Shown here: piece after piece, positions 2,830-51,164 of the stretch | Numbering within the stretch: position 1 is the first letter of the stretch | Layout: each line of letters opens with the position of its first letter | Assembly: GCA_010909165.1 (NCBI GenBank) | Contig: VJWM01000202.1 | Span: forward strand, 248,001-312,000 | Direction of reading: 5' to 3' | Length of the DNA stretch: 64,000 bases | From: Anthoceros angustus | Taxonomy: Eukaryota; Plantae; Anthocerotophyta | The notes under the pieces: generated by a model | Seen by the model: the letters and a program-made list of their open reading frames with translations, nothing else | Database searches by the model: none | Told to the model about the DNA's origin: nothing | Made by a program: the position numbers and the translations under genes

Positions 2830-3510
2830 ACTCCTCATACGACTTATGAAACCCAAGACAAAAAGAAATCCACACAAAACCATACTAGGAAGAGGTCGCC
2901 TAACCATGTGGTACTCCACAATGCTGAAGTTAAGGAGCTCAAGGCCAAGAAGATGTAGGAGTCAAGTTGGGAACTGAGGGAGCTTGGGGATGATTCCACG
3001 GAGGTACTTGAAGTGCGTAAGAAGGTGTTGTTGGAGGACAAAAGAAAGAAATGCCAATTGGAAGAGAGGGACAAGCCAGTCAAACTTCTTACAACTTGCT
3101 TGATTAGCTAGTAGAGCCGGTGAAAGGAGGATCCCATGTCCAAAAAAAAAAACATGTTACGAGGCCAAGAAAAGAACTTATCGGACGAACTTTCAAAATA
3201 GAAGTCGGAACTGGTGGTTAGGAAATCTCCAAGGGGTTTGGCAGTTAACGTTGAAAATATATAGCTTTTATCCAACACATACCAATGCATAGGTATAATG
3301 TCTCAAGTTGATGCAGAATAGTTGACCCTATAGCTTTAAGATGTGTGAAGGTGATTCTATTGAAAATCATCTAATTAAATTCAGAAAGCTCCGTGCTTAT
3401 TTTATAGTATTGACAAAGCTCCAGGCTGCCATCACTTTACTTGCATTCTTACCTGCTAGTTATATAGGAATAGCTTCACCCTTGTTCTACATAGGTATAA
3501 GCTTTTCAGA
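2830..3510 (+). mobile_element. Ty1/copia gag (UBN2-type) remnant
   Basis: SFKMCEGDSIENHLIKFRKL...AAITLLAFLPASY (ORF 3341-3529) matches the copia gag pattern F.M.EG.SI..HL..F..L...LL..LP.SY. Confidence 0.55.
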
Positions 3511-3517
3511 CTTTACA

Positions 3518-3949
3518 ATAGGAGGATAGGAGGATAGGAGGATAGGAGGATAGGAGGATAGGAGGATAGGAGGATAGGAGGATAGGAGGATAGGAGGATA
3601 GGAGGATAGGAGGATAGGAGGATAGGAGGATAGGAGGATAGGAGGATAGGAGGATGGGAGGATAGGAGGATAGGAGGATAGGAGGATAGGAGGATAGGGA
3701 GGATAGGAGGATAGGAGGATAGGAGGATAGGAGGATAGGAGGATGGGAGGATAGGAGGACAGGAGGATAGGAGGATGAGGAGGATGGGAGGATAGGGATA
3801 GGAGGATAGGAGGATAGGAGGATGGGAGGATGGGAGGATAGGAGGATAGGAGGATAGGAGGATAGGAGGATAGGAGGATAGGAGGATAGGAGGATAGGAG
3901 GATAGGAGGATAGGAGGATAGGAGGATAGGAGGATAGGAGGATAGGAGG
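3518..3949. repeat. 8-bp tandem repeat (GGAGGATA)n, about 54 units
   Basis: Directly visible, with occasional variant units such as GGAGGATG. Confidence 0.98.
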
Positions 3950-15959: not shown

Positions 15960-17249
15960 GGCACACCACCTGGTACGCCTACGCTGCCGGCGCCGGAGTG
16001 GCAGGGACAACGGACAAAAACTACCCCGGCACCTGGTGGCAGGTGGGCTTCGACTCCGCGGGGCCCAACCTCGTCACCTTGTTCAACTCCTACAGCGATG
16101 GCATCCTCTCCAATAACCGGGACTCCCAGGTGGTGGACACCACCAAGGTGTACGGAACGCGCATCTGGTGGTACTTCTATGAGACCACCCAATCCGGCCA
16201 AGCTGCGTACAACATCGCTAACGTCCAGGGCAAGCAGGTGTTGTACGAGTTCTTCTCCTTCAACGGCGCCTACACTCTGGATGGCGCTACTGCCTTCACC
16301 ATCGTCACCTCCACCTGGTACGCCTACTGCTGCCCCTGCTCACCGTGTCCAACTCCTTGCTCAACGTGCCCAACTGCTGCCCCTGCTCACCGTGTCCAAC
16401 TCCTTGCTCAACGAGTCTAACTGCTGCCGGCGCCGGAGTGGCAGGGACAACGGACAAAAACTACCCCGGCACCTGGTGGCAGGTGGGCTTCGACTGCGGG
16501 CCCAACCTCGTCACCTTGTTCAACTCCTACAGCGATGGCATCCTCTCCAATAACTGGGACTCCCAGGTGGTGGACACCACCAAGGTGTACGGAACGCGCA
16601 TCTGGTGGTACTTCTATGAGACCACCCAATCCGGCCAAGCTGCGTACAACATCGCTAACGTCCAGGGCAAGCAGGTGTTCAAGGAATTCCTGTCATTACG
16701 GGCGTGTACACAAAAGAGGGGGCCACCGCCTGGACCCTGACCGGGGTCACCTGGGCGACGCCTCCTCCGGCCGGCACGGTGGACATCAGGGGCCGGGTGG
16801 GCACGGGTCCCATCCAGCTCGCCTACGTTGTGGGCACCACCACCTGGTACGCCTACGCTGCCGGCGCCGGAGTGGCAGGGACAACGGACAAAAACTACCC
16901 CGGCACCTGGTGGCAGGTGGGCTTCGACTCCGCGGGGCCCAACCTCGTCACCTTGTTCAACTCCTACAGCGATGGCATCCTCTCCAATAACCGGGACTCC
17001 CAGGTGGTGGACACCACCAAGGTGTACGGAACGCGCATCTGGTGGTACTTCTATGAGACCACCCAATCCGGCCAAGCTGCGTACAACATCGCTAACGTCC
17101 AGGGCAAGAAGGTCGCCAACCAGTTCTTCTCCTTCAACGGCGCCTACACTCTGGATGGCGCTACTGCCTTCACCATCGTCACCTCCACCTGGTCTTCTGC
17201 GCATGCTGGCCTGTCCCCTCTGAGCCTCAGGGGAGCTGCGGACGTGTGA
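15960..17249 (+). pseudogene. Tandem beta-trefoil (ricin-B-like lectin) domain gene, three near-identical ~270-bp core copies, disrupted
   Basis: Core TTWYAYAAGAGVAGTTDKNYPGTWWQVGFDSAGPNLVTLFNSYSDGILS...WWYFYETTQSGQAAYNIANVQGK occurs at approx 15965-16233, 16425-16670 and 16840-17107. A full unit is ~145 aa with three W-containing subrepeats. Acceptor ttgcag at ~15960. Confidence 0.6.
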
Positions 17250-18719: not shown

Positions 18720-21250
18720 AACCAAACCAGAATCACCTTCCCAAGGATGATTGGGACCAACAGAGAGAGAACTTGATTTCCTACCCAAGACCTGACATTC
18801 CCCTATCTAAGCACCCATGTTGAACCATGTATTCTTCATATCTTCCTCATATCTCCTTTCCCCGCAGTATACTGTGTCCTTGCTCCAGGTGATCGCTACC
18901 CGCCCTTCCCTTATCTTCGGATCCCAGTCAACTAGTTTGAAGTGTATCTCCTTCCAAGTGTAGTTTTGTCCGAGCGAGTCCCGGACGCCCCAAGATTCGT
19001 ACTCTGAGGTCCGCGGGCTTGATGACCACGAAGTCCAATGTAGGTGCCCTCGCTATGGTTGCTTGGACTCGGACAACTCCTCACGTGGGCGTATGTCCGC
19101 CATCCCGAGGGTTTTGGTGATGGCTCAAATGTTGTGAACCCTAACCGCCTTCTCTCCTTGATGGCCTCCGTGATGAGGTTGACTCGACCGTGTCCAGGTA
19201 CGCTTTTGATCACGGACCCGCCGATTTCATTCAACCACCACCACGGTCCAGATGAGATACCACTCTTACGCCCACGTTTGGTCTTACGACCCGAGGCGAC
19301 GGGCGTGGTTGTGTCTCCTTGATGGCCTCCGGACTTCGCCGATACTGGATTGTCTCTTAACAATCGGGAGTGACACTGTGTGTTGTTGGTCCATCATCAA
19401 GTCGCCATCTTTCATATCTTCCTCATCTCCTTTCCCCGCAGATATCGCGTCCTTGCTCCAGTGATCGCCACTGCCTCTTCCCTTATCTTGGATCCCACCA
19501 ACTAGTTTGAAGTGTATCTCCTTCCTTCCAAGTGTAGTTTTGTCCGAGCGAGTCCCAGGACGCCCCAATCAGTACCCGTGAGGTCCGCGGGCTTGACCAC
19601 GAAGTCCAATGTAGGTGCCCTCGCTATGGTTGCTTGGACTCGGACAACTCCTCACGCGCTGGTGACATACGTCCGCCATCCCGAGGGTTTTGGTGATGGC
19701 TCAAATGTTGTGAACCCTAACCTGTCAGGCCTCCGATGAGGTTGACTCGACCGTGTCCAGGTACGCTTTTGATCACGGACCCGCCGATTTCTACCGAACC
19801 ACCGGCTTCGGTCCGTGATGAGATACCACTCTTACGTCCACGTTCTTGGTCTTACGACCCGAGGCGTATCGGCGTGGTTGTGTCTCCTTGATGGCCCTCA
19901 TACTTTGATTGTCTCTCAACCGGGTTTGAGTGACACTGTGTGTTGTTGGTCCATCATCAAGTCAGCCATCTTGAAGGGCGTGGGCGGCTCCGCTGAGTCG
20001 CGTGTCCGCCGTGATTCTTTCTAGCGCTCCGCCACTGCTCCCCGGACCCTCCGCTTGATCTCCTCAAGCATCTCCGCTACTTCAACTATCCGGTGGAAAC
20101 CGGGTGTTGCCTTAGTGGGTCCGCCCTCCGCGATCGCTTTCAAAAGTTTCTTCTCGAGTGATTCCTGTGTAGCTCGCCCGATCCAACTCGCCTTCCTTGG
20201 ATGGCTCCCCCACCTTCGCGAGGGGTCCGTCCTCCGTATCCGTGGTGCTCTCTCCATTCTTCTTCCTCTTTAATTGCCTTCTCTCTTTTCGCTCCTTCCG
20301 GCGGCTTCAGGTTGACACCTCCAGTACCTCCAGGGCTGCCTTTTCCTCCTTAGTCGAACCCGTTTCGTACCACTCCGCCCCAAGTTCCCTTGGCGCCTCC
20401 TCCCACTCCGCCACTGCCCTGCATCTCAATCAGGCAGATCGGCTGGGCCTTAGGGAGAGGGGTGTGGGGGTCGGGTTTCCCCCAAACTGGGTGGTACAGC
20501 AAGACCGCCTCGAGCGAGGGTTGGACACAAGGTATGCCATATGTCCCCGCCTTGCAATCCCCACACAGCGCTCAAAATCCCGTTACCTTGCCGAGTGGGT
20601 ATGGGCACGCATTGGAGTAGTGCCTGGTTCCATTAGGCCCGCGAGACCACCGCCGGAGAATTCCGAAGGCTCCCATGCGCCGCATCGGGGTCGATGCATG
20701 GATGGTCCGCCGAGGGTACATCGTCTTTGGATACTGCCTGGCAGATGCTTCCTCGCACTTGGTACGTGCCTCGCACGCCTCGACTCTTCCCGTAGTCGAC
20801 TCCACCGGTTTACGGGTCCGGAGGCGCTTTAGGGCCTTCTTGAATGCCTATGCCGGTGGCACACCGCACACCATAGATGAGTCCGAATCAGTAGTACGCC
20901 TTCCGCCGTTCTCTATCCTTCACCTGGTTGATCGTCAATTCTTCCACCCTCTTCATTACCCGCTCCAGATCTTCCCTCAACCCCGCTACTTCTTTCAAAG
21001 GGGTTGGATCAGTCGGAACCTCCTCGCCTGTAGGCATCACGACCTCCTTCTTCTCGACCCTCCGCTTAACTGCGGGCTTTTTCTTCTTATTCCTTCGGCG
21101 AGGTTCCTCCTCCTCCATGGCATCCTCGGATTCTTCTTCGGAGTCCTCCTCGGAGGAGGACTCCTTAGGACTGGTGACGGCTCCTGGTCACTAGTTGGAA
21201 GGGTGGACACCGGGTCTAAAGGTTCACAAAAGCCACCCAAAACCATGTTT
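18720..21250 (-). mobile_element. Ty3/gypsy-like gag-protease remnant containing a ~575-bp tandem duplication (approx 18832-19410 / 19405-19970)
   Basis: Protease C-terminal pattern VRVQATIARAPTLDFVVIK...RILGRPGL is present in both duplicate units; upstream charged gag-like segments (EEEEPRRRNKKKK..LREDLERVMKRVEELTINQ). Confidence 0.55.
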
Positions 21251-22739: not shown

Positions 22740-25700
22740 ATTGAACGCCTTTCCGCCTCCATAGCTCCTCGCCCACCTCCTCCTCTTCCGGCCACCGTCC
22801 ATGGAATTGATTCAAGGTCCATGAATTGAGCGCACTGGGATCCACATCAATGTAAATGACATTACGGCATAACCGAATGCTATCATACCCGATCCTGCGC
22901 CCAAAGACCCAATCTCCCTCATCACATACAATCAATCAACCTCTTCAAGAGTCTTAGGGGCTTCGATAGGGGAAACAACCCGATCATCCGCAGTGTTGTA
23001 ACACAATTTTAGTTCCACCGCACGCTCGCAAACATGTTGTCACTCCACCGCCAAGTTGCGCTTCTCGAGCACAAACGGTTGAGGCACACAATCCTTATCC
23101 AAGCTCCGCGCAAGTGAAAAGTCCTCGCATCGCATACGTCTCGACAATCTGTCACATTGGTTTTATGCCAAGAATATGTCGTCACACGCACGCTTCCATC
23201 AAGACTTCTCTACCATAGATGTGTCATCCGGAGAATGGAAGACCACAATACGAAATACCGGATGTGGTGATGCCTTTGAACCGCATGATGACCCCTTCAA
23301 ACTCGCCTTGGTAAATCTTGTGTCATACTCGTGATTGGGGATCTAGATCCAAGCCTGGGAGGTCTAACAACAACAAAGCATACGGTCGGGGCTCTACAAA
23401 CCGGGCCATGTTCACTATGTTCCCCACACGATCCCGACCTTGCTGGGTTTTTCCGGCTTGGAGTCGTTCACGATTGTCATCACCTTATCCTCGTGTGGTC
23501 GATTTCAAGGCACGTTGCGACTCCTCCATCCTTCCAAGCCCGCCTTGAATATGTGCTCCTTGAAGTTCTCGTAGGGCACCCCACTCAAGGCAAGTGTTGG
23601 CACGCGCACATGAAAGACACATCCCCACCAACAAATGCAAGGACGTTCACCGCTCGAATGCGGTGAATGCCTCCACTTTCCATGACTTATAAGGACAAGA
23701 AGCGCAAGAGAGAAACTCGATTTGGGTATAGCTAAGTGTTCATCGAGGACCCAGATTTTTGAAGGCTGGAAGTTACTAATGATTCACCATGCGAATCGGG
23801 ATATCGTTCTGAACCTCTTCAAATGTCTCACGTGCAAATGCTTGGCGTCACATGGATGAGGTTGAGTTTTTGGCCTTGTCCACCCACACGAACATTTGTT
23901 TCAATGTCAATTCTCCACCAGGACTTTCATGCATCTTCTTCAAGTTGTTGTTCCCATTGCAGATGCTCGATGCCGAAACACTTCCATACCCTCACCGTAT
24001 ACTAAGCTCCTTTGTGTCAATGACCAAGTTTGCTCTAACTGCTTTGTCTTCCTTGAATTCCTCGGCCTTCGACTGCTTTGAGAGCCCGAGCCGCTTCCAC
24101 CGCCAGTCAACTGCTTGCCTCCACTTCTCAAAGATTTCATCCACGCATTTCCACACCTCATCATCAACCTTCGCAACACAATAATCCAAAGGTCCGGTAT
24201 CCACGAGGCGGTGATAGTGACCTTAGGTCCATGCTTGGTCGCATCCCACTTAGGAACCCCGCCACCGGGCATATATCTCCAACTTCCATCTAAGTCACAC
24301 TTCACCCATCACTAGCTGGCCTTCATCTCGCTCGATGTACCTCACGGTCGATGAAAGTAAAAGTCTTCCGGCATCCGCAATGGTGTTGTGATCTGGCAAC
24401 TAACCTCATCTCCTCATTTGTGAGGCCAAGAACATATGCATCCATCCACCGTACTCTTTTGAACCAATGGATACAAGTCGGCTAGTCTAGATCGCTGGAA
24501 GGAATGATTCCTCAATACATAAAATTTGTACACCCCGATCCACCTTATCCATGTCAAAGAAGTTCTTGTTGGGACCTGGGCCGGGTCTACAATGACAATC
24601 ATGGGCACACCCACCACGTGGAATGCTTCATCTTTTGCATCAAAGCCTCCACCCAAGCCAGTCTAGCTTACGTACCTTGCCAAACCGACATAGTTCTTCC
24701 GGAGGTCTACGCTGATGGACAGCTTTAACGTGGACTCCCATACTCTCTTTCCCGCAATTGCCTCCTCGCAACATCTCTCCCGCCCCTCGTCCGCTAGCTC
24801 CGTCATCCGTGGCTACGACGCCCTTGGCCTTCTCTATGAACTTTGGGAGCTCCGCCCCTCTCGGACATCATGTGCCATTCGTCGCCGCACACTTGTTGAC
24901 CCTCCACCCCGTCCTCCACGCGATTGCCCGACTCTCAATCCCTTCCCTCTTTTTCCTCGATTGTCTACCAATCGGTGGCTTGAACCCTTCGCGTGCCATG
25001 GGAGACCCAAATCGGTCCGTTGCATCCACCGCCCCATCGTCATCTTCCACGTTCGCCGTCGGGCTGGATATGATCCACCGGCCCGGGCCATCACCGAATG
25101 CCATCGCCAAACCCCTCATTGTCTCGGTCCCCACCCGCATCCTCATCTTCGTCTTCACGGCTAGAGAGGTTAGGGTGACATCATCGCGGCGGCCATGGGC
25201 TAGGAAAAACCCGCGGCTCGGAGTGTGGGCGGACCTGTTGCTTGGACTCGAAGCACCGGACGTCCCGTGGCTGCAACCCCTCTTACCAGCAGGCTTTCAT
25301 TTCGCAAACTAGTTGCTGAAACGTGTCCCGCGGAATTATATTTTGTGCCACCACCTTTTGTTGCAGTTTCACTTCGCGGCCGCAGATCATGCATATCGGT
25401 GGCGGTTGCCAACGACACTGCCTGCAGGCAGATGGATTTGCCTGATCCCATTCCGGGCACTAGGAGTTGCCATTTGATTTCCACTCGGCGCAGATGCCAT
25501 GCTAGGGGCCTTCTCTGCAACAGTATGCCCTTTCGATGTAAGCAATGCATCATCCCGCACACCTTCTAAACATTGCTGGTGCAAAGCCTTGTGGAAGACA
25601 CGATGTCCATCACCGTGTCGCAATGCCTCCAAAAGTTCTTGCCTTTTCCGCTCGTTGGCACGCCACAATGTCAAAGTTCTTCACCGCAAAGTAGACTCTC

Positions 25701-26899: not shown

Positions 26900-29800
26900 G
26901 CCAACGACAGCAGCGACGGCGAAGGCGTGTTCGATTTTGCAAATTTCAGCCGCGGTCGATGCATGTCATTCCCGAAGGTGGCCATGAGTCTGACGACTCA
27001 ATTGTTGATCTCACGATGATGCCCGCACAACGTCGTAGTTTTAGAGGATGATTCACGGCTATGGCGGCGCGCCGAGCATAGTCCTTGAAGAGACACTGGT
27101 GAAAGCACTTCACAACGGTGGAGAGCGATGACGATGTGCGTGTTCCATATGGGGGGAACGGAGGATATGGTTGCCGCTTTTCCGACGATCCGAATGCGAT
27201 GCAGGCGGAGAGGATCGTGCACAAGAGGAGCTCGTGACGTTTAACCGGATGTCCGGTCGACGCAGACGGCGACGAGGCCCGACTGCACCCACGAGGCGAC
27301 TGCACCATCCATCCGGACTTCTTCGGATCACCGGGCGGCGCATCGCGAAGATGTACCTCACCGGCGACGGGCGTAAACCGATAACACACCGGACGCCGGC
27401 GACAAGGTCGGCCCGGCGGATCTGGGCGGGTCCTGTGAATACTATCGAGAATGTGCTACACGGCGAACACCGGGCAAGACTCGATGGAGAGTGTTGCGAG
27501 TCTCCGGACTTTGGTGAGAAGATCCACATTGTTGATTTTGGGCTTGGCTTGGAAACAATATCGCACGCGGTGATGGCGGAGTTGCACCGGGAGTCGCCCA
27601 AGAGCTAATGTGGTCCGTGGTCCCGGATCTTTGTTTGGTGATTGTGATGCCATCCGCTTGGAGTTGCTCGAGATGATGCCTCGCGCACATCCGCCAAAGG
27701 TGAGGATCTGCGTAACGAGCACCGACGCGTTAAGCGTAAAGTACCTCCGGCCGAGCTAGAATGGATTTGGTCTTAGAGAAGCATTGTTCGACCAAGTTGT
27801 GCGATTTAAAGCGGCATTGTTGTGACAAAAATGTTTAGAGCGTGTTGGCCATTCAAATTGAAGGTGATTCGTAGCATTCTTCCGCATGACAAAAGGAGAG
27901 CAGGAACAGCATTTGCAAGACCATCGGATCCGATCAAGAAAGAGGAGTTGTTGCCCATAGTATGGATAAACCGGATTCCACATGGGAAGAAACAGGTGTG
28001 TGTGAGGGCTCGGGTTTTCGCATTGGGTCACTAAGATACAAGAATGCAAACCAGGTAGTGAAAAATGTTAGATGGACCGTAGGCTACGGTCTCAGCAGCC
28101 AACGCCATATGGATTACACGTCATGTGGATGGACGTTTTCTTCAAAGGCGGGAAAGATCCGAATCGGAAGTCTTCAACTTGCGACTCGACACGAAAGAGG
28201 AGATCTTCATTGAGTATGCCAGCGATCGGTGTGCTATGCTTGTTACTGTACTTTTGCAAGCTTTGGATGAAGTATTTCCGTTAAAATACCAGTGCAACCG
28301 GTTTTCGATCTGCATCGATGACCTAAAGAGGAAAATAAAAGACGAGTGGTCGGATCACGACAAGGTGAGATGGCGGTCCTTATTCCAGTGCGGTCACGGA
28401 TGTCCACCGAACTTTGGCGCAACCCCATGGCCTCACACCCTTTTCTTGCGAATGAAGGCGGGCTTGAAACAAACTGTGTGCACATTGCCGACGCCTTATT
28501 GTTGCGCAGTGACAAGAATGTGGAGCCGCCGACTCCAGAGAACAACAAGGAGAGCGAAAATGGCGCGGCACCGCACAAGTGCTTCGGCAAAGTTCATTGG
28601 TATTGCCATAGATGGTATGGACCAAAAAAAACAGAGTTGCCCCATTACCGCAGATTGCCAAAGACGGTTGATTCGGAGCCCTTGTCGGGCTTCACGTTCT
28701 AGGTGTGCTGGTGTTCAACTACTTGGTGCGCACAGTGTATTTGAGTTTCGAATGTGAGAAATGATCCGGAATCAGGTGATTGATGTTATCAATACGGAGG
28801 GGCCGCTCCCCTATTCTATACTTGCGGATGGACAACATGCTCAAAACAAGAATCGGAGGTATTGGCATATCCCATGCTTGTGGCGAAAGGTATCTTCAAA
28901 AATCAAGGTGGGGTTTCTTCTTGTTGGCCATACCCACGATCGATTGACCAAATGTTTTCGAGGTTCTCGGTTGTGCTAGGGTTGAAGGATGCTTTCACAA
29001 AATGATAGGGTTCTTTGGAGCGTACACCCCATCACCGCAGATTCACATCTTGAAGGAGGTGCCGGACTTCAAGACCTATCTATGGCGAAGGGGATCGTCG
29101 CGTATGACTTGCATAATCACGTTTTCAACACCCAAAATAACAAGGAGAAGCTATCGGAGAGGACGGATGCTAAGATGCAAGGAGTTTTCAAGTTCGATCA
29201 CCGGTCACCGGAGGGTGGTGTGGCTATTACGTTGTGGGTGCCACCACGGGTGATTGTGCCCATTGTTGCCGTTGGTCCCATCACATGCCCAAGGTAAAGG
29301 AAAGGGACAAGCAAAGCGGAAGGATGCCTCGATGCCCCGCATGGCGGTAGTGGTAGTGTAGTGGCGAGTCCATGAAGTAAAAGCGGGCCTAGAACGCACG
29401 GCACATATGAATGTGGAGCAACTATCATGGTGGGATACGTGGGATGAACAGTAGCAATAGCCGAGAGACTAGCAGCATTCCATTCCGTTGGAGACAGAAT
29501 GGTCTTGGTACACTCGCGATGAAGAAAACGAGGTACCACCAGAGACCCTCCAGACTCAACTTTGGTTGATCCCAATGGCCGACGGATTTTTGGACATGGT
29601 GGAGGTGTACGGGGCACAGGGCGCGGAGGGAGGGCAAGGCGAGGCTCGGTCGAGGTTGTGTGAAGGAGATTGAGGAGGGAATGATGGTTGTGTCAAGCTG
29701 GGATGATCCAGAGGCCCATTACGCTCGCAAAAGTGGTGGAGGTGGACCATGATGGTCCCTTTCATGATAGTTCATTGGTGGACGAGAACAATGATGCATT

Positions 29801-39122: not shown

Positions 39123-40199
39123 ACGTAAATATATATGGCAACATGCTCACAATATGGAGGCGATATACATGGTTGAATAAACTGGACTTCTCCTCCAAAA
39201 TAAGCTGGGCTTGTTTTTTTTTCGTGTGAGGTATGGAGTGTAAATAAGGCGGAAAGGGAGGAATAAGCACGACGTGATCTGCACCTGTCTCGGACACCCT
39301 GATCGTGTAGGAGGTACCGGAGCTCACTCCTGTGGACCCCACTTTAACCAGTATCGGATAAGTCCCGACCCCACCCGTCAAAATGGGATAAGTAACAAGT
39401 AAAGTAATTAGAATTTGAGCCGTGAGTTAGACAGGCGCGCCACGTGATGGTAATCGAGTGGTGCCTGCATGCAGCAGCCAGACCGTAGGGGTTGCCAAAG
39501 GGGTCATATGGTGTATTCATGTTCGGCACAAGGCGGCAGTAAGGCCAGTAAGCCAAGCGTAATGAGGTTGGCTTCTCGATGGGCCACGGGATGAAGAGCC
39601 GCCTTCCGCCGATGCTACTTCCGACGGAGAGAGGCAAGACGAGGTCATTCTTCCAAACAACTCAAGGACAGATTCTCGCGCCGACACCGGCTCGGGCGTT
39701 GTCTTGATCGCCAGCACCCTTTGGCGCAGCCTGACCAAGGTAGGGAAGCAAACCCACACCCCGCGGGCCGAGACCGGAGATCACGCCAACAAGGAGGAAG
39801 ATGGGACCCAAGAAAGCGCGAGGCGCGTGAGTCATGGCGCTTGGTGGAGCGCAACATCGTCACTGCGCCACCCGGACTTTGGGCGTGTGGGTAAGGAGGC
39901 GGAGGAGGCTGGTGGAGCGAAACATCGCTACTCAAGCGCTACCTGCACTTTGGGCCGTGGGCCGGAGGAGGCGGAGGAGTCGGTGGAGGAGTGGCACCGG
40001 ACATTTTCAGCCGGTGGAGGTTAGCCTACTTGAATTTTCGATGGAAGTGCCGGTGGGGTGCGTGAAGGAGGGCCACAATGGCATCGCTGGAGGGAGGGCG
40101 CCGTCGGCCGGCGCCTCGTCAGACCCACCGAGCAGGCATAAAGGCCGGTGCGTACGCTCCGCCTCTTGCGCCTACGCCGCAGACATCACTGTGATGCCC

Positions 40200-41030
40200 G
40201 GCTGGTGGCGTGTCGGAGGGAGGGCCACGCCTTTATCCGCGGCGCACCACCTGCTGGGCTTACAGGGGCGAGGCGCTGGCGCGCGGCGCCCCCACCTCCC
40301 CACCACCCACCGATGCCCGATGGTGGCGGGGAGCGGGAGCGCCTCCCTCCACGCACCACCCCACGTACCCACCGACGGTGGTGCATGGAGGGGAGAGCGG
40401 CGGCCGTCCCTCTGTCGCCACCACCCGTCGGGGTTTACGGTGTGGTGCGTGGCGAGGGATGGCGCCGAGCCGGCGCCCGCCTCCACACCACCACCGTGAT
40501 GGGTGGAGCGAACGGGTGCAGCCCGTGGGCCGCCTCCCTCCACGCACCACCCATACGTGGCCCACCGACGGGTGGCGCGCTGGAGGGAGGCGCCCGGCCG
40601 GCGCCCGCCAGGCGCACCACTGTTGCCCACCCACGGGTGGTTCGGGTAGGAGGCGCTGGGCCGCGCCCACACGCCACCCCACGGCAGGCCACGGCAGGGC
40701 GGGCGCGCCTACCGGCGCCCTTAGCACCACCTGGCTGGGTGAAGGGTGGCGGGAGCTAGGGAGGCGCGGCCGGGCCGGTGCCCTCCCAAGATCCTGGTCA
40801 TGGGCGCGGCCGGCGCCCCTAGCACACCGCCCATGGGCGCGGCCGCGCCCAACACGCCGCCCGCCCATGGGCGCCGGTCCGAGCGCCCTCCCTAGCACAC
40901 CGCCCATGTGCGCCTGCTCGCCGCCCCCTAGCACACTAATCGGGCCGCGCCACGGGCCGCCCCTTGCCGGCCGCCAGCCCCTCCAGCACACCCCCCCTAC
41001 CCATGCGCCGGCGGCGCCTCCTCATAGGCC
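40200..41030. repeat. Very GC-rich array of imperfect direct and inverted repeats
   Basis: For example CTCCCTCCACGCACCACC (40343-40360) / GGTGGTGCATGGAGGGAG (40377-40394); a second similar hairpin at 40532-40591. Confidence 0.8.
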
Positions 41031-41249
41031 GCTTTTAAGAAAATCAATATGTGAGTCAAGAAGTTTGTAACTTGGGATTTTGATCTAGTGTTTGGCGGTT
41101 CAGCCATGTAGTAATGAATCAAGTTCCGGGTTCAAAACCCATATCTTTTAACAACTCAACTTTGTTTTTAATGGATGCTTGCATGGGCGCATGGGCAACT
41201 AACTTTGTTCATTTTAAGAACGGCATTGCCTTAAAGCCCAAGTGGTTGC

Positions 41250-41860
41250 ATTGAGTGCCGAAGGTTGAAGACTACGATCGGGCGACCTTTTGGATGAGGG
41301 CCGCAAACCCTAGACGTTGTGTGGGCACTGTCACCGCCGATGGTGGGCCGGGAATGATACTATTGAAGACGAGCAAGCAATGGAGGAGAACGATAACTTT
41401 GAGGCGACGATATGACCGTGATCCGAATATGGCGGTGGTTCTTGACTCGCTGTCGATGCAAGGCATGGATGAGTCGCCAGCCGCACTCTTCAATGACTAT
41501 TGTCGATGCCGATGATCACTCCCTCCTTAGCGTGATGTTTGTTGCAATGTTCTACGACGACGAAAAATGAGACTTCTAGATGTGATTGTTTTATCAGGTT
41601 CCACCACTTCAAAGTAAAAGCTATTGTAATAAACATATAAAATGGCAGCCCTCAAACATTCTACAAAGTTGAGACGCCCACACCCCAATCGCGGCTCCAG
41701 CTCTAGGGTGTTCACTTGAAAGTGCGCCTTTATCATCGTATGACTCGTAAAGGGTGTGCATTATCAAAGTAGGGCACATATCTTTGTTCTAGGTAAGGTG
41801 TTCGTGACAAGCGGTGCTGATGACCGGCATAAAGATATCCCCCTTCAAAAATTATCGTGT
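41250..41860. repeat. Dispersed ~620-bp repeat, copy 2
   Basis: Co-linear with 37140-37760. Confidence 0.85.
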
Positions 41861-42391
41861 TCAAGCTCGGCGACGAGACGGGCCACAGCCGACAACACGC
41901 CCAAATGGCCGAGCACCTGAGGAGGGAGTACTGTGCTCCGGGCCCATGTGGAGGAGGCAATTCAACAAGTCGACCGACTTTGCCTACTAGCCGGAGCTCA
42001 AGGCACCGGAGGTGGCGCCACCCCAGGGCAGTGGACGATTTTCCGCATCGGGTCCGAAGGAGGAGCGAGGGAGGAAGGCCCCAGACAAGACAGCCACGGG
42101 ACCTTAGGAGCCCTTGTTTGGCATGGCGGCAGCGGCGGGGAGTAGGCGGAGGATTTAGGGAAGGCGGCCCTGCACGTGGTAAGCACTCAGCACTCACCAC
42201 CAAGGAGGAGGAGGGCCCTGGGGGGTCGTGGAAGGCGACTGCAGGCAGCGAGGCGGCGGAGGACTCAAAGGGTGAACCACCCGAGAAGTCCAGCGAGCTC
42301 CAGTGTTCGTGAGTCCGGACTTTGTCCTGACCTCCGAGCCGGACCAGGGGTCCGCCTCCTGAAAGTCCGGACTCATGGGTCCATACTCTAG

Positions 42392-46549: not shown

Positions 46550-47439
46550 CATCACAAAACTGGATAACCATGTTTTTCATGTGGAAATCATATGGCGCCA
46601 CGGCCCATGCAGTCGGCCATGGAAAAAACCATATGAAAATAATATCCTCAATGGGTAAGTATTTTTATTTTTATTTCCTACTTGTTCTATATTATTTATG
46701 TTTGAGTCCTACAAAGAGCTCATATATTACTCATGAAAGGACAATATACTCATGATATAAATTTCATTCAGTGTCTATGTAGTTTAATTATCTCAATATA
46801 TAGGTGCACTTATATGAAATCTCTTATGGATCTATGAAAAATAAAATAAAAAATATTTACGTCATTAAATTTTATGTCCTTCATACCAATCTTATATGGA
46901 TATTTATGAACTAAATTTATTTTTTTAAATGATTACATATTTTTATTATATGAAAATATCTAATAATATAAAAATATGATAAGTACATCCAATAAAATTC
47001 ATATGTATTTTAATACCATGTATCATGTGTAAAATAATATAAAGAACATGTAGGTAGGGTTCATGCAGTCGGCCATGAAAAAAGGGCATGAAAATCATAT
47101 CCCTATCAGTTTTTGATTTATGTCATTCCTTGTAAAGTCTTTGTACCCATTTGGTTTTGAGTCCTACAAAAGAACTTGTAAAATACTCATGAAGGTGCAA
47201 GTGTCCTTCTATTTTGTGTGTCATGCTAAATGTATATACTTTCTTTATCTCAATATATATGTACATTTATATGGAAATCTGTATGGATTTATGTGAAAAT
47301 TGATATAAGCATCATACACGAATTGATATGATTTATATATGCCTTTCACAATTCCTTTATGAATATCTAGTACCTGAGTTTTAAATTTCTTGTATATATA
47401 CATATATGCATATATATATATATACATATATATATATCG

Positions 47440-50400
47440 TATATATACATAATAATTAATCTTTAGTACAAATATTATGATTAAAAATACACTATATTTA
47501 TAACTTTAAAATAATTATAATCATTCAACAATTACAACATCTAGCTTTTAAGCGAATCCAAGCTAGGGCTTCTTGTGCACGATTCTCCGGCTCGGGACGA
47601 GCTATCGGGACCATGATCCCTCCCCATCAATACGAACTCACAGGTCAAATTTTTCTTGCAGGTGCGCCTAACATATACATTCAACCCATACACTACAAAG
47701 TTGAAGAGCCCCTGCAATCAGAGATGTAAGAGGCTATCATACGGGACCGGAGACTGAAAATCACACCAAGGCAGGGTGCTCTTACCATGAGACCTGCTGT
47801 GCCAATGTGAAGGCAATACAGCCAGAACAGCCGTTGATGTGGTTTCACAGAATCATGAATTCGGTTGATAGTTCCATTGAACAGTATAGCTCCCCATAGA
47901 GGTACACAGAATGTGATAGACCGTAGCACCTGGTACCAGAGTTTTGATAGTTGGCATCCATGGTTGCACAGTGGTCCTCCCACACTGCAATTGAAGAAAA
48001 CCACAAAGTTTCCGTGACATTTCCTGTAGTTGTCTCTGTCCTGACCCAACACCAAGCACCAGCCGGTCCATACCCATTTGAGCTGCAAATGCTAATAAAT
48101 TGACCACTGCACTAGGAAAGATATGAAGATCACCACTAGCCTGTCCAAACTTGAAATTGCAGTCCTTCTTGGATCACCAATGCATTAGGCCACTCCCAAA
48201 TGCATCTTCCAGTGCCTGAACGGCACACAAGAGAACCTTTAGATGGTCCAGAAAACTATACAGTATGGCAGATTGTCGCAGTAACATATGTCAGTCAGTG
48301 CAGGGATGACTACACCTAGCTGACATGCCGAGAATGAACAGGAGCGTACCAACTGAAGTTCAAACCGTGGGTTTCAGGACTTCCATGTCAGCTAGATTGT
48401 CTGCAAGGTAACGCCATTCTCCATTCACAAGATGGGCAATTAATGCAAACATGGCAGCCTGATGCTTCTTCTCCATGCGACAAAGCAGGCTAAAGTCCAA
48501 GTACCTGTACCAGCTAGCTAACAGTCGATGAAAATCCAGTGTGACAAGATTCAGCACGCCTCATTTTGCCACCTACCATCGGCACGAGATGTCGCTTTGC
48601 TTCATTCTGATCCTCAACACTAGCCTGCTGACCACTCGACGATGCCCTCTGCAATTAGTTGCATGTCCCCAGGTCGTATATATACATAATAATTAATCTT
48701 TAGTACAAATATGATTAAAAATACACTATATTTATAACTTTAAAATAATTATAATCATTCAACAATTACAACATCTAGCTTTTAAGCGAATCAAGCTAGG
48801 GCTTCTTGTGCACGATTCTCCTGGCTCGGGACGAGCTACTCGGGACCATGATCCCTCCCCATCAATACGAACTCACAGGTCAAATTTTTCTTGCAGGGTG
48901 CGCCTAACATATACATTCAACCCATACACTACAAAGTTGAAGAGCCCCTGCAATCAGACGGATGTAAGAGGCTATCATACGGGACCGGAGACTGAAAATC
49001 ACACCAAGGCAGGGTGCTCTTACCATGAGACCACAGCTGTGCCAATGTGAAGGCAATACAGCCAGAACAGCCGTTGATGTGGTTTCACAGAATCATGAAT
49101 TCGGTTGATAGTTCCATTGAACAGTATAGCTCCCCATAGAGAGGTACACAGAATGTGATAGACCGTAGCACCTGGTACCAGAGTTTTGATAGTTGGCATC
49201 CATGGTTGCACAGTGGTCCTCCCACACTGCAATTGAAGAAAACCACAAAGTTTCCATACTTCCTGTAGTTGTCTCTGTCCTGACCCAACACCAAGCACCA
49301 GCCGGTCCATACCCATTTGAGCTGCAAATGCTAATAAATTGACCACTGCACTGGAAAGATATGAAGATCACCACTAGCCTGTCCAAACTTGAAATTCGGC
49401 AGTCCTTCTTGGATCACCAATGCATTAGGGCCACTCCAAATGCATCTTCCAGTGCCTGAACGTGCACAAGAGAACCTTTAGATGGTCCAGAAAACTATAC
49501 AGTATGGCAGATTGTCGCAGTAACATATGTCAGTCAGTGCAGGGATGACTACACCTAGCTGACATGCCGAGAATGAACAGGAGCGTACCAACTGAAGTTC
49601 AAACCGGTGGGTTTCAGGACTTCCATGTCAGCTAGATTGTCTGCAAGGTAACGCCATTCTCCATTCACAAGATGGGCAATTAATGCAAACATGGCAGCCT
49701 GATGCTTCTTCCCGTGACAAAGCAGGCTAAAGTCCAAGTACCTGTACCAGCTAGCTAACAGTCGATGAAATCCAGTCGATGACAAGATTCAGCACGCTCT
49801 CACTTTGCCACCTACCATCGGCACGAGATGTCGCTTTGCTTCATTCTGATCCTCAACACTAGCCTGCTGACCACTCGACGAATGCCCCTCTGCAATTAGT
49901 TGCATGTCCCCAGGTCGTATATATACATAATAATTAATCTTTAGTACAAATATTATGATTAAAAATACACTATATTTATAACTTTAAAATAATTATAATC
50001 ATTCAACAATTACAACATCTAGCTTTTAAGCGAATCCAAGCTAAGGGCTTCTTGTGCACGATTCTCCCGGCTCGGGACGAGCTACTCAGGACCATGATCC
50101 CTCCCCATCAATACGAACTCACAGGTCAAATTTTTCTTGCAGGGTGCGCCTAACATATACATTCAACCCATACACTACAAAGTTGAAGGCCCCTGCAATC
50201 AGACGGATGTAAGAGGCTATCATACGGGACCGGAGACTGAAAATCACACCAAGGCAGGGTGCTCTTACCATGAGACCTGCTGTGCCAATGTGAAGGCAAT
50301 ACAGCCAGAACAGCCGTTGATGTGGTTTCACAGAATCATGAATTCGGTTGATAGTTCCATTGAACAGTATAGCTCCCCATAGAGAGGTACACAGAATGTG

Positions 50401-51164
50401 ATAGACCGTAGCACCTGGTACCAGAGTTTTGATAGTTGGCATCCATGGTTGCACAGTGGTCCTCCCACACTGCAATTGAAGAAAACCACAAAGTTTCCAC
50501 ATTTCCTGTAGTTGTCTCTGTCCTGACCCAACACCAAGCACCAGCCGGTCCATACCCATTTGAGCTGCAAATGCTAATAAATTGACCACTGCACTGGGAA
50601 AGATATGAAGATCACCACTAGCCTGTCCAAACTTGAAATTCAGCAGTCCTTCTTGGATCACCATGCATTAGGCCACTCCCAAATGCATCTTCCAGTGCCT
50701 GAACGTGCACACAAAAGAACCTTTAGATGGTCCAGAAAACTATACAGTATGGCAGATTGTCGCAGTAACATATGTCAGTCAGTGCAGGGATGACTACACC
50801 TAGCTGACATGCCGAGAATGAACAGGAGCGTACCAACTGAAGTTCAAACCGGTGGGTTTCAGGACTTCCATGTCAGCTAGATTGTCTGCAAGGTAACGCC
50901 ATTCTCCACTCACAAGATGGGCAATTAATGCAAACATGGCAGCCTGATGCTTTCTCCATGTGACAAAGCAGGCTGAAAGTCCAAGTACCTGTACCAGCTA
51001 GCTAACAGTCGATGAAATCCAGTGTATTATAAGATTCAGCACGCTCTCATTTTGCCACCTACCATCGGCACGAGATGTCGCTTTGCTTCATTCTGATCCT
51101 CAACACTAGCCTGCTGACCACTCGACGAATGCCCCTCTGCAATTAGTTGCATGTCCCCAGGTCG
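47440..51164. repeat. Tandem triplication of a ~1.24-kb unit (47440-48676, 48677-49917, 49918-51164)
   Basis: The junction CCCCAGGTCG|TATATA occurs twice; the TCG microhomology is shared with ATATCG|TATAT and GGTCG|ATGACC. Confidence 0.95.
50119..50760 (-). pseudogene. GCR1: Captured GCR1 (plant 7TM receptor) fragment, internally deleted; further copies at approx 47640-48280 and 48870-49510
   Basis: GAWCWVR, VLRSITFCVPLWGAILFNG|TINRIHDSVKPHQRLFWLYCLHIGTAGLM, an intron, then GAFNFVVYGLNVYVRRTLQEK. These match the GCR1 motifs TFYAPLWGAILYNG, GTINRIHD and GLFNSIAYG. Confidence 0.85.

Follow-up and report, generated by a model that had tools for sequence, protein, structure and literature searches.

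A Decayed Multi-Copy Stretch in the Genome of Anthoceros angustus, Probably the Relic of a Methyltransferase Cargo Gene of a Sola1-Type Transposon

The subject of this work is a stretch of DNA on the minus strand, positions 22740-24770, within a 64,000-nucleotide segment of an Anthoceros angustus contig (VJWM01000202.1); the whole segment is referred to below as the window. We conclude that the stretch is probably a dead copy of an accessory (cargo) gene of a Sola1-type transposon, and that this gene would have encoded an amino-methyltransferase with a ParB-like part. This reading was reached because the relic of a Sola1 transposase is found nearby, because a published element of the same type has its methylase gene and its transposase on opposite strands, because the strongest methylase-like signal anywhere in the window occupies the position and strand so predicted, and because the path through the reading frames is confirmed in part by other genomic copies. 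The stretch itself is close to fully decayed and cannot encode a working enzyme. A preliminary description, made from the letters alone, had proposed a fusion of a ParB/Srx-like core with a beta-class N6_N4_Mtase, read across frameshifts, as a possibly undescribed route for the marking of plant DNA with N4-methylcytosine (4mC) or N6-methyladenine (6mA).

The transposase relic is the only solid domain assignment near the stretch, and the Sola1 identity is taken from it. The core of a Sola1-type (DUF7869) DDE transposase was located on the plus strand at 28611..28958 with Pfam DUF7869 and tblastn. The strings DGMDQKK (28611-28631), QNKNRR (28842-28859), and VGHTHD (28923-28940) follow one another there in the order expected for the transposase. 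The Pfam DUF7869 match at 28758-28976 has an E value of 2.3e-5 and a score of 24.5 bits, just below the curated cut-off of 26. The transposase core of Sola1-1_Ec32 from Ectocarpus, the sequence of which was read from the supplement of PMC12477816, aligned by tblastn to 28815-28958 with an E value of 4e-4, by far the best match in the window. The relic is divergent from the methylase-like relic and lies 3.8 kb from the presumed 5' end of the latter. No remaining transposase segments were detectable, and no further Pfam domains were found in the region from 20 to 33 kb.

The layout of this locus resembles that of Sola1-1_Ec32, which is 21.5 kb in length with 282-bp terminal inverted repeats and intact genes, and which belongs to a high-copy family whose copies are mostly degraded (Genome Biol 2025, PMC12477816). 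On the strand opposite the transposase, Sola1-1_Ec32 has a gene for a protein of 1104 amino acids that combines a ParB-like part with an N4C/N6A methyltransferase (PMC12477816). The present locus offers, in addition to the alignment of the transposase core, a candidate for the cargo gene in the same divergent arrangement, and it differs in that no terminal inverted repeats were found, in that the presumed element is only ~9-10 kb, and in that both genes have been destroyed. The supplement of PMC12477816 holds only the transposase, and the comparison with the cargo protein from Ectocarpus follows the published description of that protein. This kind of element, a Sola1 transposon with a methylase as cargo, is already published. 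Such cargo genes have been reported for a brown alga, and accessory genes of a related ParB or methylase kind are published from red and green algae (PMC12477816; PMC4738411; bioRxiv 10.1101/2025.02.11.637652). The best blastp match of the Sola1-1_Ec32 transposase is Sola1-1_PPa of Repbase (PMC12477816). The literature search turned up no description of a cargo gene of this kind from land plants. If PPa stands, as we assume, for the moss Physcomitrella patens in the naming used by Repbase, then the presence of Sola1 elements among land plants was known before.

The stretch belongs to a multi-copy repeat family, as judged from one DNA run of the same organism in which 227 contigs cover it with a likeness of at least 80% and the summed word depth rises to ~550. 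The word depth is ~500 at 24394..24812, and this part is therefore common to many copies. No second copy of the stretch was found within the window, and none of the contigs from the single RNA run of the same sample falls on it. Most copies have an extra A behind position 23211 (depth 81.9/88.8), where the present copy has a deletion of 1 nt at 23211/23212. When an unknown base is inserted at 23211, the frame containing motif IV is joined to the frame containing WHKTN and SKPLRLLKRLI, giving 187 codons with three stops. One of the frame hops made in the preliminary description (23211) is thus supported independently by paralogs. In the region that had been assigned to ParB, copies have an additional CC behind 24512 and two additional nucleotides at either 24393 or 24342, which indicates a path from frame class 2 to 1 to 0 and not a hop at ~24610. 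None of the 12 indels listed for the copies has a length divisible by three, which is the pattern expected under neutral decay. The C-terminal block at 22831-23061 is almost without contig cover, and the comparison with paralogs bears on the hops outside it.

All of the motif strings quoted previously were recovered on the minus strand between 22740 and 24770, and their order is as claimed. From the presumed amino terminus, these are RQLRE (24749-24763, frame class 1), FHVVG (24609-24623, class 2), ALLLLDLPGL (23350-23379, class 0), WHKTN (23156-23170, class 1), SKPLRLLKRLI (22934-22966, class 1), DEGDWVFG (22900-22923, class 0), GAGSGMIAFGYA (22866-22901, class 2), and RNVIYIDVDP (22837-22866, class 0). 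Since the strings occupy three different frames, a continuous reading requires at least 4 to 6 frame hops. The most plausible path is interrupted by ~16 stop codons within ~690 codons and by no fewer than 4 frame breaks, and the longest stop-free piece on the plausible coding path in this region is 76 codons.

A 65-codon stop-free frame at 22741..22935 contains DEGDWVFG and RNVIYIDVDP and is a candidate for the motif I/II region of a beta-class amino-methyltransferase; it has no stops in 65 codons, compared with 6 and 2 in the remaining two frames. The string GAGSGMIAFGYA overlaps the DNA of this frame and is read in another. The preceding frame at 22925..23209, with 95 codons and 1 stop, contains WHKTN and SKPLRLLKRLI and is a candidate for motif X (HP..KP..L..LI) of the same class of enzyme. 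It terminates in a (TTGA)n slip site at ~22935. A (TTGA)n/(TCAA)n run at 22926-22945 sits exactly between the frame of KPLRLLKRLI and the frame of DEGDWVFG, and it is plausible that slippage at this run shifted the frame. Further upstream, the frame at 23212..23484 (...NIVNMARFVEPRPYALLLLDLPGL...) contains the motif-IV-like sequence, with DLPG at 23353-23364, and a middle region in the same frame class extends over 23851..24399, the longest stop-free piece of which (76 amino acids, 23995-24222) has no homologue. The region at 24394..24812, with the strings FHVVG and RQLRE, is the one described as ParB/Srx-like, an identity that is unverified. A Glu/Lys/Ser-rich frame of 99 codons without stops (PKESSSEEDSEEESEDAMEEEEPRRRNKKKKPAVKRR..., 20891-21187, minus strand) is found just downstream of the methylase-like relic; it has no match in Pfam, and a perfect 12-nt hairpin lies within it at 21140-21164.

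The methylase-like signal was determined by using a local profile of the YhdJ-type N6_N4 enzymes, the members of which were E. coli YhdJ, three enzymes from phages, and 80 relatives from bacteria and archaea. A purpose-written routine for local alignment, in which both frameshifts and stops are permitted, was applied with this profile to both strands of the whole window. The top score of the window was determined to be 29.4 bits, at 23290-22825 on the minus strand, with a runner-up of 24.8 bits and a mean of 18.9 bits per 2-kb bin. The null distribution was obtained from 512 simulated 2-kb bins from a third-order Markov model, of which two reached 29.4 bits; a Gumbel fit gave a p value of 0.002, and the p value lies at ~0.002-0.004 per 2-kb bin. 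For a place that had been specified beforehand the signal is suggestive; it is not significant over the window and still less over the genome.

The traceback demonstrates that the score is carried only by the C-terminal block, KPLRLLKRLI..EGDWVF..(GAGSG)..RNVIYIDVDP, over ~25-50 residues. On the side of the window the aligned segments are KPLRLLKRLI, LIVCDEGDWV--F, LGAGS-GMIA, and IRLCRNVIYIDVDPSALN, and on the side of the profile they are KPEKLLERII, LASSNPGDVVLDPF, MGSGTTCVVA, and KKLGRRWIGIELNEEY. The region 22741..22935 matches profile columns 210-250 (GDlVlDpF.GsGTT...gRrfigiE) only once frame hops are allowed. The segment FPLSKPLRLLKRLI pairs with 'hptqkPekLleriil' of the local profile, with a p value of 0.03 alone and of 6e-4 to 2e-3 together with EGDWVF. 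By hmmsearch, a read-through with X at three junctions gave 6.2 bits and a nominal p value of 3e-4 for a path that had been chosen by the alignment, and a read-through with a single junction at the (TTGA)n slip site gave 3.7-5.1 bits and p values of 6e-4 to 2e-3. The same profile found no match by hmmsearch in single pieces or in single-frame tiles with X at stops. The order of the motifs, with X followed by I and both C-terminal to IV, is the correct one for the permuted enzymes, but the block aligns only with 1-3 frame hops and at a p value of ~0.003 per 2-kb bin, which is not significant over the window.

The stretch resembles the bacterial and phage beta-class amino-methyltransferases (PF01555, for example E. 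coli YhdJ) in that its motif-like strings follow the sequence IV ... X ... I ... II, and it resembles the YhdJ-type profile in the block P..KP..L..LI....GD.V...G.GSG....R..I.I. It differs from these enzymes in the lack of a Pfam match, in the DLPG sequence at motif IV, in the confinement of the similarity to ~50 residues over three frames, and in the blank result with the second profile described below. Some beta-class amino-methyltransferases are encoded in phage loci that also encode ParB and terminase proteins. A ParB-fused phage or plasmid methylase was sought for the construction of a profile, and only unfused enzymes turned up.

Several results weigh against the derivation of the stretch from a methyltransferase gene. 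The p value of the YhdJ-type signal over the entire window is ~0.2-0.35, which is not significant. The second profile, of the CcrM/IWHKPNPM type and constructed from 80 viral contigs, gave no signal. The motif IV position reads D-L-P-G and fails the [DNS]-P-P-[YFW] signature of N6_N4_Mtase; the preliminary description had noted that the catalytic Tyr codon appears to be missing, and a minority variant among the paralogs (+C behind 23356) likewise has no aromatic residue in motif IV. The reading of GAGSG needs two compensating frameshifts 12 codons apart inside the otherwise open 65-codon frame, and these two additional hops are doubtful. In the supposed frame at 23212-24399 there are 12 stops in 396 codons with ~15 expected, which is not below the other frames or the window. 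A long frame with few stops was considered as a sign of a relic open reading frame and was rejected, the stop density being that of the background.

The searches of databases point in the same direction. Pfam was scanned with 40 stop-free pieces at E values up to 10, together with two read-throughs with X at each break, one of 60 amino acids (FPLSKPLRLLKRLI-X-VCDEGDWVF-X-GAGSGMIAFGYA-X-CRNVIYIDVDP...) and one of 131 amino acids from WHKTN to NSWTLNQF. Neither N6_N4_Mtase (PF01555) nor MT-A70 nor ParBc was found in the 40 pieces, and neither read-through matched any Pfam family. The corrected translation thus gives no match to the N6_N4_Mtase family in Pfam, an outcome that the preliminary description had itself set down beforehand as evidence against its proposal. 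With phmmer, no methyltransferase was found among the solved structures in PDB for the pieces or for either read-through (five queries overall). No intact member of the family that could be aligned was recovered from the protein collections, the ESM Atlas, or the metagenomes. No relative of the best pieces was found in collections of 5.8 billion and 1.8 billion proteins. The 76-residue middle piece, a 224-residue transposase piece, and a 73-residue DUF7869 piece had no homologous proteins, decay working against queries of this kind; the 224-residue piece, which is too decayed, had 0 matches among 1.8 billion proteins. The ESM Atlas returned only noise for two pieces, and metagenome scans with a 65-residue C-terminal piece and a degenerate KDEAFHVVG pattern found nothing. 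The limits of the element are also lacking. A Sola1 transposon is delimited by terminal inverted repeats and a 4-bp target-site duplication; no convincing inverted repeats were found flanking 21-32 kb, where the best pair is 29 nt at 76%, and the ends of the element are consequently undefined; no palindrome arrays were found in 20-33 kb.

A less likely reading, to which we give roughly half the weight of a cargo relic, is that the motif strings are a chance resemblance obtained by the free reading of three frames in decayed internal or non-coding repeat DNA, which might still belong to a Sola1 element. Such an origin is consistent with the lack of a match of any kind at the level of databases, with the window-wide p value of the local profile signal and the two random bins of 512 that score as high, with the small number of residues that align while motif IV, WHKTN, and the ParB strings go without profile support, and with a stop density near the background. 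Chance does not readily explain, however, why the best match of the window falls at the place and on the strand predicted from the published architecture beside the transposase relic, or why paralogs bear out one of the frame hops and a second coincides with a repeat that is prone to slippage. The relic of a beta-class amino-methyltransferase remains the most likely reading, on the basis of this context and of one weak local profile signal, in the face of an empty result from the databases. The earlier assignment to the beta-class N6_N4_Mtase is accordingly sustained in part, with regard to ancestry, by the context and the weak profile signal; the lack of a Pfam match and DLPG at motif IV speak against it. 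The decay of the stretch, its occurrence in many copies, and the transposase relic with its orientation are established by the data, whereas the origin of the motif block in a methyltransferase gene and the former presence of a ParB-like part upstream of it are our inferences.

The ParB-like part itself is without support. Neither profile recognized motif IV, WHKTN, or anything upstream of them, including the ParB strings. No piece of 24300-25115 matched ParB/Srx (PF02195) in Pfam, no match was found in PDB, and the GxxRxxA or DGxHR-type box of this domain was not recovered. The hop that had been used to connect FHVVG with AH does not occur among the listed paralog indels, and the ParB/Srx-like core described previously could not be substantiated.

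A different kind of methyltransferase was also considered. The stretch could be the relic of an MT-A70-like (Ime4/METTL4-type) amino-methyltransferase instead of an enzyme of the N6_N4_Mtase type, and we regard this as improbable. In METTL3, METTL14, and METTL4 the motifs are arranged as DPPW, WVKTN, KP.E.Y..IE, ELFGR, and gW..GN(E/Q), and the stretch offers a parallel order of DLPG ... WHKTN ... KPLRLLKRLI ... WVFGR ... NSWTLNQ in one reading with two breaks only (23211 and ~22935), for which the excursion to GAGSG is unnecessary. The 131-residue read-through, however, matched neither Pfam MT-A70 (PF05063) nor METTL3, METTL4, or METTL14 in PDB. The gap from WVFGR to NSW is an atypical 23 residues, compared with ~6-8 residues in MT-A70 proteins, and the published cargo gene is described as the N4C/N6A (N6_N4) type. 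The MT-A70 and M.MboIIA-like enzymes have been placed in one permuted group (PMC4738411).

The possibility that the breaks are introns, and that the plant has here a functional ParB-methyltransferase gene of its own that is spliced, is practically excluded. Motif blocks that belong to different frames adjoin or overlap one another and leave no room for introns, and there are ~16 in-frame stops. The absence of a contig from the RNA run, the multi-copy word depth, and the 12 of 12 listed indels that are not multiples of three also speak against a host gene. The proposal of a route for 4mC or 6mA marking fails for the present copy, given its stops, its frame breaks, the DLPG sequence, the lack of an RNA contig, and its nature as a repeat beside a Sola1 relic.

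The history that would connect these observations can be formulated as follows. In intact Sola1-type elements of this kind, the transposase gene is accompanied by a divergently oriented gene whose product joins a ParB-like DNA-binding part to a DNA amino-methyltransferase of the bacterial type (circularly permuted, beta-class). The intact cargo protein is presumed to bind the DNA of its own element and to mark it. In the present copy, the transposase and the cargo genes would both have been eroded by point mutations and small indels. The sole survivor would be the most conserved methylase block, made up of motif X plus the first part of motif I (P.SKP..LL.R.I....EGD.V) and possibly of G.GSG and R..I.ID.DP as well.

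The stretch is to be regarded as transposon cargo and not as a host gene gained by rare transfer, as are N4CMT from bdelloids and DN4MT1 from Marchantia. These two are eukaryotic 4mC writers acquired by transfer (PMC8885841; bioRxiv 10.1101/2021.02.12.428880), and both are intact and expressed host genes with catalytic motifs of the SPPY type, the sequence in DN4MT1 being TSPPY (bioRxiv 10.1101/2021.02.12.428880). The likeness would lie in the occurrence of bacterial-type beta-class amino-methyltransferases within eukaryotic genomes. Unlike N4CMT and DN4MT1, the present stretch is dead, is the relic of a multi-copy transposon, reads DLPG at motif IV, and has no contig from the RNA run.

A related concept is that of transposons or other selfish elements in which ParB-like binders are found with DNA-modifying enzymes and may mark their own DNA. 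In the Plavaka elements of the red alga Bostrychia, PAG2 and PAG3 bring together an N6A methylase with SET and ParB with a 2-oxoglutarate (2OG) oxygenase on separate proteins (bioRxiv 10.1101/2025.02.11.637652), and fusions of ParB-helix-turn-helix with Dam are found in chlorophytes and chytrids (PMC4738411). The Bostrychia and chlorophyte families differ from the present stretch in the transposon superfamily and in the domain combinations, and the chlorophyte family is of the Dam type and not of the beta class.

Several other features were noted elsewhere in the window. Three tandem repeats of 437 nt are found at 15964-17249 on the plus strand, the other two being 98% and 75% identical to the reference copy; these are open in frame, with a unit of ~145 amino acids (GTTDKNYPGTWWQVGFDSAGPNLVTLFNSYSDGILSNN...IWWYFYETTQSGQAAYNIANVQGK), and matched no Pfam family. 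A unit of ~1.24 kb occurs at 47437-51164 in three head-to-tail copies that are 97-100% alike (repeat families D3-D11), and a long array with a period of 8 nt occupies 3444-3900, where 53 overlapping copies of a 154-nt reference were counted (family D1). The G+C content reaches 0.61 at 40001-42000, compared with ~0.5 around it. An open reading frame of 221 codons at 39834-40499 on the plus strand is rich in Arg, Gly, and Ala and has no Pfam match.

The case illustrates how sequence that has decayed completely can take on the look of a clean domain architecture when three frames are read freely. The stretch is not a candidate 4mC or 6mA writer, and self-marking by Sola1-type transposons, with 6mA or 4mC, is a question for intact copies rather than for the present fossil. 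There is a slight chance that the repeat family retains intact and expressed members in this land plant, whose ParB-like/amino-methyltransferase protein, non-canonical at motif IV, would deposit 6mA or 4mC on the DNA of the transposon itself. If this is true, the intact members would constitute a form of self-marking that has yet to be demonstrated for land plants, of which the present copy would be only the fossil. The stretch adds one more locus to the record of the past activity and abundance of Sola1-type transposons with DNA-methyltransferase cargo in this genome.

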